A stretch of 64,000 nucleotides of DNA, taken from the NCBI RefSeq assembly GCF_964188315.1, contig NC_135673.1, positions 6,386,001 through 6,450,000 of the forward strand, given 5' to 3'. The notes below the pieces were generated by a model. It had not been told where the DNA came from and did not search any database. It saw only the letters and a program-made list of their open reading frames with translations. Of this stretch, positions 36,784-40,559 are shown one piece after another (the stretch's first letter is position 1; the number at the start of each line of letters is the position of its first letter). A program made the translations under genes and the position numbers. The stretch is from Podarcis muralis (Eukaryota).

Positions 36784-37080
36784 CCGTATTTTTCACCCTA
36801 TAGGACGCACTTTTTCCCCTCCAAAAATGAAGGGGAAATGTGTGTGCGTCCTATGGGGTGAATGCAGCCTTTGCTGAAGCCTGGAGAGCGAGAGGCATTG
36901 GTGCGCACTGACCCCTCTCGCTCTCCAGGCTTCAGGAAGCTATCCGCAAGCCTTGCAAGCCCGGGGGAGTTCCCGCGGGCTCGCAAGGCTTGCTGGCAGC
37001 AGCCTGCAGCCCGGAGCATGGGGCGCCCTCCGGAGGACGCCCCGTGCTTCGGGAAGGTGTCTGCAAGCCTCCCGCGCCCG
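36784..37080. mobile_element. One-ended Tc2/pogo-type non-autonomous element
   Basis: TA|CCGTATTTTTCACCCTATAGGACGCAC; no right TIR; sits at a deletion in CR1 ORF2. Confidence 0.75.
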
Positions 37081-38680
37081 GCTCCTTATGCAGTAACACT
37101 GGTTTCCCTAGATGCCTCCCACTTTTCTTTCTTGTTGGAATTGTCTTCATTTGGGCCTTCAATATTTCTCCTTTTATAAACCCCCATCCTTCTTGGACTC
37201 CTTTCTCTTTGAGTATTTCTAACCATGGGATCACACCCAGTAGCTCCTTAAGCTTTTTGAAATTGGTCTTCTTAAAGTCCAGAGTGCATGTCCAACTACA
37301 CATAGTTTCCCATTGCCTATCATGAAACTAAGGAGAACATGATCACTTCCTCTCAAGTTTCTGAGTACTTCCATTTTGTCGATCAGTTCCTCCCTATTGG
37401 TGAGGACCAGCTCCAAGATAGACGAACTCCTCGTTGCTTCTTCCATCTCCTGGAATTGAAATTGTCAGTGAGGAGAAAAGGAGAAATAGAGAAAATTGTC
37501 GGCCCTTATACTGTATTCTTGGCAGAGTTTGAGTGCCAACACATATCAGGGAAGTTGAAGTCCCCCATGACTACTATATCCCTCCTTTTTGAATGTTTGG
37601 TAATCTGCTCTAATAAGGAATCATCCAAATTTTCAGTCTGGCTTGCCAGTCTATAGCAGGCAGCCACAGTAAGGTCACTGTTATTTCTCTTGCCTACAAT
37701 TTTTACCCTATAAACTCTCAATCTGCTTTCCATGCTCCAGGGAATGGATTTCTTCACAAGTGTACATATCCTTTACAAATGATGCTCCCTGCCTCTTTGG
37801 TCTATTCCTTTTGAACAGGTTATACCCCTCAATTCCTACATTCCAGTCCTGAGTCTCATACCATCAGGATTCAGTAATGCATGCCAGGTCAAATTTGACA
37901 TCCTTTACTAAAAGCTCCAATTTGTCTTGCTTGTTTCCCATACTCTGTGCATTTGTGTTAACACAATTCAAACCATGAGTCATTCCGAGCAGCTGCTTCC
38001 TTCCTATAGTTTGCTGCCCTTTAGCAGGTTTCTGGAGCACCACCTGTTTCCTGTGTATCAATGAAGCTATTATCCCCAGTGTCAGGTATTCTTCTGTTAT
38101 TTGTAATGTTGTCTCCCTCCCCCTCAAGATCTAGTTTAAAGCTCTCCTGATCAGGTTCTTGAGGCTCTTAGAAAACACATTCTTGTCAAACACTGTGAGG
38201 TGCAGCCTATCTCTTGCCAGAACTCCTTCCTTAAAGGAAGTGGAGAACATGACCCAAGAAGCCAAATCCTTCCTGACGACACCACCTGCACAGCCAGTGG
38301 TTTACCTCCAGTATTTTCCTCTCTCTTCCTGGGCCATGATCTTCAAGAGGAAGGGGTGGTGAAAATACTACCTGTGCCGCAAGTCTCTTTAGCTCGCTGC
38401 CCAGGGTTTCATCGTCTTTTGCTATGCATTGCAGGCTGTGTGTGGCAGTATTGTTTGTTTCCACATGAATCAGAAGGAAGCTGTAGTGGTCAGTGGGCTT
38501 TATAAGACTTGGCAACTTCTCTATCACATCATCAATCTTTGCACCCAGAAGACAGCACATCTCCTGTGACATCCTGTTTCCTCATCACACTACAGCCTCT
38601 GTTTCCCTCAGTAGGGCAGTGTTTCCCAACCGGTGTTCCGCGGCACAGTAGTGTGCCGCGAGATGTTGCCTGGTGTGCCG

Positions 38681-39085
38681 CTCCGGCAGCTCCTCTGCGG
38701 CGGCGGCTACAGCGGCAACCTCGGGCGGCTCCTGAGGCGGCGAAGGCGGCCCAGCGGCCGGAGGCGAAGACGGTTGCGGCTGCTCCCGACGCTCACCAGC
38801 GGCCTCCTCTTCCTCGCCGCTGCTGCTTCGCGGCTTCTCCTCCTCTGCCTCCTCCTTCTCCTCGCCGCCGCCTTTTTCGGGCTCCGGCTCCTTCTTCCCC
38901 TCAGGCTCCTCCGCGGAAGGCCCGTCCGGCAGCTCGGCCTCCGAGTCGCCGCTGCTGCCGCCGCCGCCGCCTCTTTTTCCTCCGCTACCGCCGCCGGGCT
39001 CTCCTCCTCCTCCGGGCCCCTCGTCCTGGGCGGGCAGAGCGGCGGGGGTCTCGGCGGCCGCCGGGCTCTCCTGGGTCTCCTGCAT
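38681..39085 (-). pseudogene. Captured 5' coding fragment of an unidentified host gene (acidic, Pro/Gly/Ala-rich N-terminus)
   Basis: Uninterrupted MQETQESPAAAETPAALPAQDEGPGGGGEPGG...AAAAEELPE; CpG-rich; ends abruptly at the hAT left end. Confidence 0.7.
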
Positions 39086-39400
39086 GGGGGGCTACGCGGC
39101 CTTCCCGCTCGCCTTACACGCGCGGCACACGAACAGGCAAGGCGGCGCGCTGGGCCGAAAAGGGGGAGGGAGGGGGCACAGAGCGCGCAGGCGCACGCAC
39201 AGGGGAGGCGCCCTCTCACCGGGCTATGTGCACGAGAGCGGACCCGGCGGCGAGTCTCACGAGAGGGGCAGGGACCAACTCGGCAGACGAGAGGGGGAAG
39301 GAACGGATTCCAAAACCGGTGGCTTGCCACGTTGTATATGTTAATTTCCTATGTTAATGGGCTAGGACAGGGTTTGCGATCGGTTAACGCCCAGTTATGC
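39086..39400 (-). promoter_or_regulatory. Captured CpG-island promoter and 5' UTR-like sequence
   Basis: NRF1-like GCGCAGGCGC at 39185-39194; TCTCACGAGA at 39255-39264 (one change from TCTCGCGAGA); G-rich boxes; upstream of the cargo ATG. Confidence 0.55.
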
Positions 39401-40559
39401 TTTCCCCCTAGGAATTAGGCATTTCGGTCTTGAGGTACGCTCGCTTCACACCCCACTTGGAGGTTCCCCGGCAAGGGGGAGGGAAAAAAATTGAAAGTTA
39501 CACTTTCGTGCGTCCCTCCCGGCGTGACGCTGCGCGCTGACGTCACGGGGCTGTAATGGTGGTGTGCCTCGAGATTTTTTTCATCAAACAAGTGTGCCTT
39601 TGCCAAAAAAAGGTTGGGAAACACTGCAGTAGGGAGTCACCTATCACCTCCACATCTCTTTCTCCTCTGGGGAGTGGCAGAATCATTCTATGGGCTGTGC
39701 CTTCCAAAGCCTGCTTGGAGTGTTCTGGGATCTGCATCCATTGTTCTTGAGTCTTCCCCTCTTGTTAATTGGAGCTTATTTTGATATTGTTGGGATAAGC
39801 TACAAAGACAGGAACCTTATGGTTTGAGTACTCCTTCCTCTCAGTTTGACACCTCCAGGCTGCAATTCCCTTTCCCGAGTATCTTCTCCATGGAAGGTAG
39901 TACATTATTACCACACTCATCCACGATCAGGAGCCTTGGATCTGAAGTGGTTAGATCAAAAATGGAAAAAGACTCCTTCAAGTCCTTCTCCTCCTGTCTT
40001 CTTTCTCCTCTGGGGGGTGGCAGTAATCATTCCATGCACTGTATGTTCCACAGCCCCCTTGGTGTCTTCTGAGGTTGGCAACTGCTGTCCTAGCTCCTCT
40101 GGCTGAGAATTGGTGCCCAAGGTAAGAGCATGAAAGCAATTTTGCAACTCTAACGACAAAACGTGGCTTGCAACTATTCTACTTCTGTGTGTCACATTCC
40201 TCCAGAGGTTAGTCTCTTGCAATGGGTGATCTTCCTTGTTCCTGGGGACACCCCATCTATCTTGCTGTTCCACAGCCAACTCAGTTCTATCAAGAAATTC
40301 TGCATGTTGTCCTGTAGCTTGAGGTGTGGCTAGGCAGGCCTCAAGTTTGTTGCACCTTCTCTTCTAGCAGGACAGCCAGCTTGCACTTGCTACAAGTGTA
40401 CTGTTTCTTGTTCTCTGGCAGGAAGACAAACATGGCAAAGTGTTGCAGGTTAATGAAGCAGTTCCATCACCCTCCATGTCTCTTGGTCCTGTGCACACCA
40501 TGAGTCAGAACCCTGGGCCTCCCCCTTAAACTCCCCAACTAAACACCCCTGTTTATGAA

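Follow-up and report, generated by a model that had tools for sequence, protein, structure and literature searches.

A Pack-type hAT transposon of the lizard Podarcis muralis whose interior is probably a copy of a host CpG-island promoter and first-exon start

In plants, new gene structures arise to a large extent from gene fragments captured by DNA transposons, whereas in animals such capture has been encountered mostly as single, immobile copies. Animal Pack-TIRs, the elements with terminal inverted repeats (TIRs) in which such capture has been surveyed, are mostly hAT transposons (208 of 370), and only four of the 370 are multicopy, with three to five copies each; the captured sequence has a median size of 224 bp, the multicopy cases are GC-rich, and microhomology, present at 67.6% with a median of 2 bp, is explained by gap filling or by the FoSTeST template-switch model (PMC8277862). 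The words “lizard,” “Anolis,” and “reptile” are absent from the main text of that survey (PMC8277862). Here, a 1010-bp element of this kind is described from the lizard Podarcis muralis, where it occupies positions 38617-39626 of a 64,000-nucleotide (nt) stretch of contig NC_135673.1 (RefSeq assembly GCF_964188315.1, positions 6,386,001 to 6,450,000 of the forward strand), called the window below and used for all position numbers. With a probability of about 0.85, it is a Pack-type non-autonomous hAT element, the interior of which is a DNA-level copy of a host CpG-island promoter, 5′ untranslated region (UTR), and first-exon start. This reading rests on an abrupt step in copy number, strand-specific RNA that stops sharply on the upstream side, a base diagnostic of the expressed locus, and sequence running on without TIRs past both borders of the cargo, which together support the capture proposed in a preliminary description of the locus.

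The element resembles the Xenopus tropicalis transposon Pack-hAT-N8_XT (Tan et al. 2021, PMC8277862), likewise a non-autonomous hAT transposon with intact TIRs and target site duplication (TSD), in which the interior has been replaced by a 5′ piece of a host gene, as is probably the case here, and it shares with animal Pack-hATs breakpoint microhomology, GC-rich cargo, and an apparent spread by later transposition. In contrast to the surveyed Pack-TIRs (PMC8277862), it resides in a lizard, its 774-bp cargo comprises promoter, start site, ATG, and 135 codons, and its sequencing depth suggests 10-20 copies. The Pack-TIR kind is already known, and the present member stands out by the size and completeness of its cargo and by its copy number. 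Rice Pack-MULEs, too, are TIR elements that duplicate and scatter GC-rich gene fragments and alter local GC content (PMC5861414); unlike the lizard element, they are plant transposons of the Mutator type with long TIRs and TSDs of 9-11 bp, number in the thousands, and are often expressed, while the lizard copy is silent. Ds-type deletion derivatives with filler DNA share the same presumed origin, namely, interrupted gap repair following excision or fork stalling, a microhomology-guided template switch, and a return to the element. Classical derivatives of this type, however, keep element sequence or short fillers, whereas the filler in the lizard element is a functional-looking gene start.

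The ends of the element are marked by perfect 15-bp TIRs (CAGTGTTTCCCAACC and its reverse complement) and a perfect 8-bp TSD (CAGTAGGG), exactly as first described. In general, hAT TIRs are short (about 10-25 bp) and begin with YARNG, the TSD is 8 bp long, and the Ac-group target is nTnnnnAn. Among other copies of the present family, the flank consensus derived from loose alignment ends at 38617 and 39626 is nTCTAGAn, a palindromic 8-bp target of hAT type; in combination with the TSD length of 8 bp and the CAGTG start of the TIR, it places the element in hAT. In this copy, TA stands at TSD positions 4-5, and the target consensus of the Buster group is nnnTAnnn (PMC3517528). When the element and one TSD copy were removed in silico, the minus-strand reading frame of ORF1 (open reading frame 1) of a long interspersed nuclear element (LINE) was restored (...RGERDVEVIGDSLLRETEAVV..., VIGDS/LLRETE at the protein level). 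Moreover, a LINE contig from one of the DNA data sets (X9) crosses the insertion point as an empty paralogous site, joining 38616 to the sequence after the second TSD with a single CAGTAGGG. Both observations bear out the insertion site given in the preliminary description, which had further called the target a CR1 esterase motif. That the target is a LINE is upheld by the restored frame and by an endonuclease domain downstream of it, at 37509-37772 on the minus strand (Pfam Exo_endo_phos_2, E 8.3e-7), but Pfam called no esterase on the ORF1 piece; the esterase label is accordingly based on the GDS motif and on what is known of CR1-like ORF1 proteins.

For a comparison with other copies, the contig sets X1 and X9 (DNA) and X15 (RNA), as well as the stranded RNA reads of X23, were aligned to positions 38420-39830. 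Summed word depth reached 2-4.8e5 across 38612-38680 and approximately 39476-39626, yielding a layout in which hAT arms with depth above 1e5 lie on either side of a non-transposon interior with depth of about 200; at the border of the right arm the value fell abruptly, from 7.6e3 to 250. Single-copy depth, taken from contigs identical to this copy (X9 records 16, 20, and 22) or from single LINE paralogs, was 8-17. To an order of magnitude, the arms thus represent a hAT family whose copies number in the tens of thousands, while the interior is present approximately 10-20 times. Canonical family members lose their match to this copy at 38680/38681 and regain it at 39456, with variants at 39470 and 39494; since they diverge at both borders, the interior is not the usual interior of the family. 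The cargo had been taken to extend to 39550. The capture itself was supported; the right border lies near 39455, since 39456-39626 is high-copy hAT arm (171 bp rather than the approximately 75 bp assumed), and the element is not unique but one of roughly 10-20 copies by depth; further TIR-flanked copies had been named as possible. Within the window itself, a TIR search that allowed three mismatches found no further match with two or fewer, BLAST found no second copy of the arms or the cargo, and neither approach revealed an autonomous hAT partner.

Both arms meet the cargo with their inner sides, and both junctions are recombinant, an arrangement that excludes read-out from a neighboring insertion and speaks against a composite of two MITEs (miniature inverted-repeat transposable elements). 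The latter possibility, a macrotransposon in which two hAT MITEs flanking a host promoter and exon 1 came to use their outer ends jointly, was rejected on this ground and is the least probable of the alternatives considered: hAT insertions are common near gene 5′ ends and the arms are as short as those of MITEs, but the cargo abuts both arms on their inner sides (38681 and 39456), each end has one TIR and none lies internally, whereas a composite should retain complete MITEs along with TIRs that face inward, and the 3-4 bp of microhomology at the left junction are better explained by template switching.

In composition, the interior stands out from its surroundings, with a ratio of observed to expected CpG of 0.95 (87 CpGs) compared to 0.08-0.10 in the flanks, and a GC content of 0.69 compared to 0.44-0.47. 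An ATG at 39085 on the minus strand opens a frame of 135 codons up to the cargo border, confirming the truncated coding start noted earlier; the frame remains open for 166 codons in all, through the left arm and into the LINE, with a stop at 38585-38587. Whereas hAT transposases consist of a BED finger, an RNase-H-like core, and a hAT dimerization domain, no Pfam domain of any kind, including BED, dimerization, and transposase domains, was detected in the interior ORFs, in agreement with the earlier statement that no transposase remnant is present, and no Rfam family was found on the element.

Reads of X23 over 38708-39139 map mainly with the first mate on the plus strand, indicating, under the usual layout of stranded libraries, minus-strand RNA, i.e., the strand of the ORF. 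Their depth is approximately 70-130 at 38708-39091, 44 at 39092-39139, 3.7 at 39140-39187, and 0 at 39188-39427. This profile, which takes in the ORF and approximately 60-100 nt of 5′ UTR, places the transcription start approximately 55-100 nt upstream of the ATG and leaves the remaining 300 bp or so of the cargo as untranscribed upstream DNA. The cargo is thus built as a promoter, a 5′ UTR, and part of a first coding exon, with approximately 300 bp of upstream sequence behaving as a silent promoter. At 38996-39139, about a quarter of the reads have the opposite orientation (33-35 versus 106-127), compared to less than 4% at 38708-38851; these could reflect either a library effect or a short transcript, antisense or divergent, at the captured gene's 5′ end.

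The RNA, in turn, differs from the transposon copies. At position 38767, G is found in 89 of 90 X23 reads and in the X15 contig, whereas the multicopy DNA contigs of X1 and X9 have A. On the exon side, an RNA contig (X15 record 11; 251 nt, depth 315) matches 38678-38806, beyond which its remaining 122 nt are unlike the hAT arm; over the 30 nt seen past 38678, the reading frame is kept (EELPER/EKSPEAPASA) and the composition is unchanged. On the promoter side, the first 197 letters of a 706-nt DNA contig (X9 record 21) match 39260-39456, and the other 509 are unlike the hAT arm. Another contig (X9 record 18) starts exactly at 38678, as would be expected from a branch in the assembly graph at this point. 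The RNA reads also contain allele-like variants (T/G at 38696, 47 of 75 reads; A/G at 39094, 46 of 94 reads), as well as a 12-nt in-frame deletion at 38724, in a GGC-rich coding repeat, in 18 of 77 reads. Variants near 50:50, together with this deletion, fit one heterozygous locus with two alleles. Taken together, these results point to a transcribed, TIR-free relative that reaches past both borders of the cargo. Such a donor had been predicted in the preliminary description, and the RNA that leaves at 38678, the DNA that leaves at 39456, and the base at 38767 all speak for it and hence for capture.

Several points weigh against a captured host gene. The donor was not recovered as sequence, and the case for it rests on one RNA contig, one DNA contig, and one diagnostic base; the continuation on the exon side is visible for 30 nt only, and the DNA contig leaving at 39456 averages a depth of 86, too high for a single-copy locus unless a repeat lies in its other part. 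Summed word depth does not equal copy number, as the tool itself warns, and the figure of 10-20 copies is accordingly rough. In addition, no search gave the 135 codons a protein homolog from which a host gene could be named. A phmmer search of these codons against 1.84 billion representatives gave no match, with the qualification that HMMER penalizes such low-complexity sequence. Two word-indexed searches of 5.8 billion proteins, covering lengths of 86-273 and 74-236 amino acids, likewise gave no match at E ≤ 0.01, and these ranges leave out a full-length protein of about 800 amino acids or any protein much longer than the query. Among Protein Data Bank sequences, a search at E ≤ 10 returned Gly/Ser linkers only, human EIF3B being absent from the matches, and the best score in the ESM Atlas, 0.56, is meaningless. 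EIF3B, tentatively mentioned as the donor in the preliminary description, is therefore neither supported nor excluded, the N-terminus being of low complexity and fast-evolving.

The absence of a homolog would also fit the strongest of the competing explanations, according to which the element would be a Ds-like deletion derivative, the interior being the family's own 5′ region, with the promoter, 5′ UTR, and N-terminus of its autonomous transposase or else of a host gene derived from hAT, and the RNA past 38678 the mRNA of that gene. The layout would suit an autonomous hAT element, in which a TIR is followed by a 171-bp arm, approximately 300 silent bp, and the start site, with the ATG lying some 540 bp in from the end; long low-complexity N-termini occur in several hAT transposases, such as Ac, and a low copy number of the interior would also be expected of autonomous copies. 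In an autonomous element, however, the promoter part would be contiguous with the arm, whereas the DNA contig that contains it (record 21) leaves at 39456 into non-hAT sequence. Furthermore, the fall in depth from 7.6e3 to 250 occurs at the arm border without a taper, other long family members carry different inward sequence, and the interior ORFs gave no BED or dimerization domain. The GC content of 74%, CpG ratio near 1, stranded expression at a housekeeping level, and 50:50 variants look instead like a single-copy CpG-island gene. A Ds-like origin is accordingly regarded as improbable.

Slightly less probable still is that the cargo is host DNA but stems from a noncoding GC-rich first exon, either of a long noncoding RNA or within a 5′ UTR, with an ORF that is open by chance. 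The failure to find a protein homolog would then be expected, other frames of the GC-rich stretch are open for 207-282 codons, and the Kozak context of the ATG is weak (C at −3 and C at +4). Against this, no stop interrupts the frame where it passes the junction into the continuation specific to the donor, the length variants in RNA and DNA (12 nt and 3 nt) are multiples of three, and an acidic composition rich in Pro, Gly, and Ala is characteristic of disordered N-termini.

If the interior was captured from a protein-coding host gene, its acquisition could be envisaged as follows. An abundant hAT family member with TIR CAGTGTTTCCCAACC and an 8-bp TSD would have lost its own interior during repair or replication, and a 774-bp segment, templated by the 5′ CpG island of an expressed host gene, would have closed the gap. 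This segment would begin within exon 1 (past codon 135/136) and reach, by way of the ATG, 5′ UTR, and transcription start, into approximately 300 bp of promoter. The arm (...GTGTGCCG/C) and the donor (...TTCTCCCGC...) have CCG or CCGC in common where they meet at the left junction, a microhomology of 3-4 bp that fits capture by template switching and may have served the switch into the gene. The chimera would then have been mobilized in trans by a hAT transposase, as its TIRs and four retained GTGTGCC subterminal motifs would permit, and would have multiplied to roughly 10-20 copies, the multicopy depth being taken as a sign that mobilization occurred. This copy landed in LINE ORF1, generating the TSD CAGTAGGG.

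In approximately 620 assessed bp, this copy departs from the family contigs by a 3-nt deletion (at 39000) and 11 private substitutions. The preliminary description had called it young, which, given these changes, holds only in a relative sense. Eight of the 11 substitutions convert CpG to CpA, and the CpG decay in the promoter half suggests methylation. All eight (39127-39421) are CG to CA on the plus strand, with no CG to TG, and lie in the half comprising the 5′ UTR and promoter, whereas the assessed part of the ORF has no private substitution, only the 3-nt deletion; chance, gene conversion of the ORF half, or deamination of one strand are possible reasons for this bias of strand and position. 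None of the X23 reads carries the private bases of this copy (0 of 44 at 39115, 0 of 29 at 39127), and the transposon-type A at 38767 occurs in at most one of 90. Their absence from the RNA indicates that the transposon copies, and this one especially, are silent in the X23 sample. The insertion is present in a second individual, with two X9 contigs (records 20 and 22) matching exactly and including the right junction. The left junction was found in 11 further runs from three studies; X9 falls outside that list though it holds the right junction, and the left-junction search cannot show absence in other runs. In the runs examined, no exact empty allele was seen. The features of the locus are listed in Table 1.

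Table 1. Positions of the hAT element, its putative captured cargo, and the interrupted LINE in the window
Feature	Position	Strand	Basis
Cargo, 774 bp, probable copy of host gene 5′ end; GC 0.69, CpG observed/expected 0.95	38682..39455	-	Depth ~199 (X1) and 172 (X9), roughly 10-20x single copy; composition
Captured coding part, ATG and 135 codons (MQETQESPAAAE...AAAAEELPE)	38681..39085	-	ORF and stranded RNA cover
5′ UTR and transcription-start zone of captured gene	39086..39185	-	X23 depth
Untranscribed upstream (promoter) part, 8 private CpG>CpA changes	39186..39455	-	No RNA reads at 39188-39427
Left capture junction, CCG(C) common to hAT arm and donor transcript	38678..38681	.	RNA record 11 from 38678; hAT copies to 38680/38681
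Left hAT arm (65 bp) with subterminal GTGTGCC at 38651 and 38673	38617..38681	+	Depth 2-4.4e5; canonical members leave at 38680/38681
Right hAT arm, 171 bp, two GTGTGCC motifs (39562, 39592), palindromic TGACGTCA at 39538-39545	39456..39626	-	Depth 7.6e3 to 4.8e5 towards end
Left TSD copy CAGTAGGG	38609..38616	.	Sequence; central TA fits Buster-type hAT target nnnTAnnn (PMC3517528)
Left 15-bp TIR CAGTGTTTCCCAACC, begins CAGTG	38617..38631	+	Sequence search
Right 15-bp TIR, exact reverse complement of left TIR	39612..39626	-	Sequence search
Right TSD copy CAGTAGGG	39627..39634	.	Sequence
Interrupted host LINE	37509..39764	-	ORF1 pieces 39546-39764 and 38234-38581; endonuclease 37509-37772; frame restored

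Among other observations on the hAT family, the right arm contains a perfect palindromic CRE/ATF-type site (TGACGTCA), which, lying in the arm, belongs to the family and not to the captured promoter; as the family's depth suggests copies in the tens of thousands, it may spread such sites across the genome. Abundant miniature forms join the left arm (at 38681) to the last 21 bp of the right arm (from 39606) through a filler of 10-32 nt, e.g., GAGCGAGTCC, with a depth of 815 in X1, and in some transcripts a 22-bp subterminal unit is tandemly repeated (38672 joined back to 38651). The arms of this copy differ from nearly all covering contigs at 38648 (G versus C), 39585 (C versus G), and 39605 (A versus C), differences that are either private or marks of a cargo-carrying subfamily. 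Outside the element, a GC-rich block at 36784-37095 (GC up to 0.69) splits the ORF2 region of the same LINE and begins with CCCTATAGGACGCAC ... GTGCGTCCTATGGGG as an inverted pair; this block, too, is probably a repeat insertion.

With this element, a vertebrate transposon carrying a complete module of promoter, start site, and start codon appears to have multiplied. It provides a natural system for studying how TIR elements acquire host DNA, as the microhomology at the junction can still be read, and for following the fate of a CpG-island promoter placed in new chromatin, which in this copy is silent and has decaying CpGs. Tentatively, and at slightly less than even odds, a single, still active hAT family may have repeatedly captured and amplified the CpG-island promoters and first exons of many genes, with template switching biased to open, GC-rich 5′ ends, which would make it a vertebrate counterpart of the rice Pack-MULEs. 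If many genes have indeed been captured in this way by one family, the lizard would rank first among animal models of Pack-type capture.

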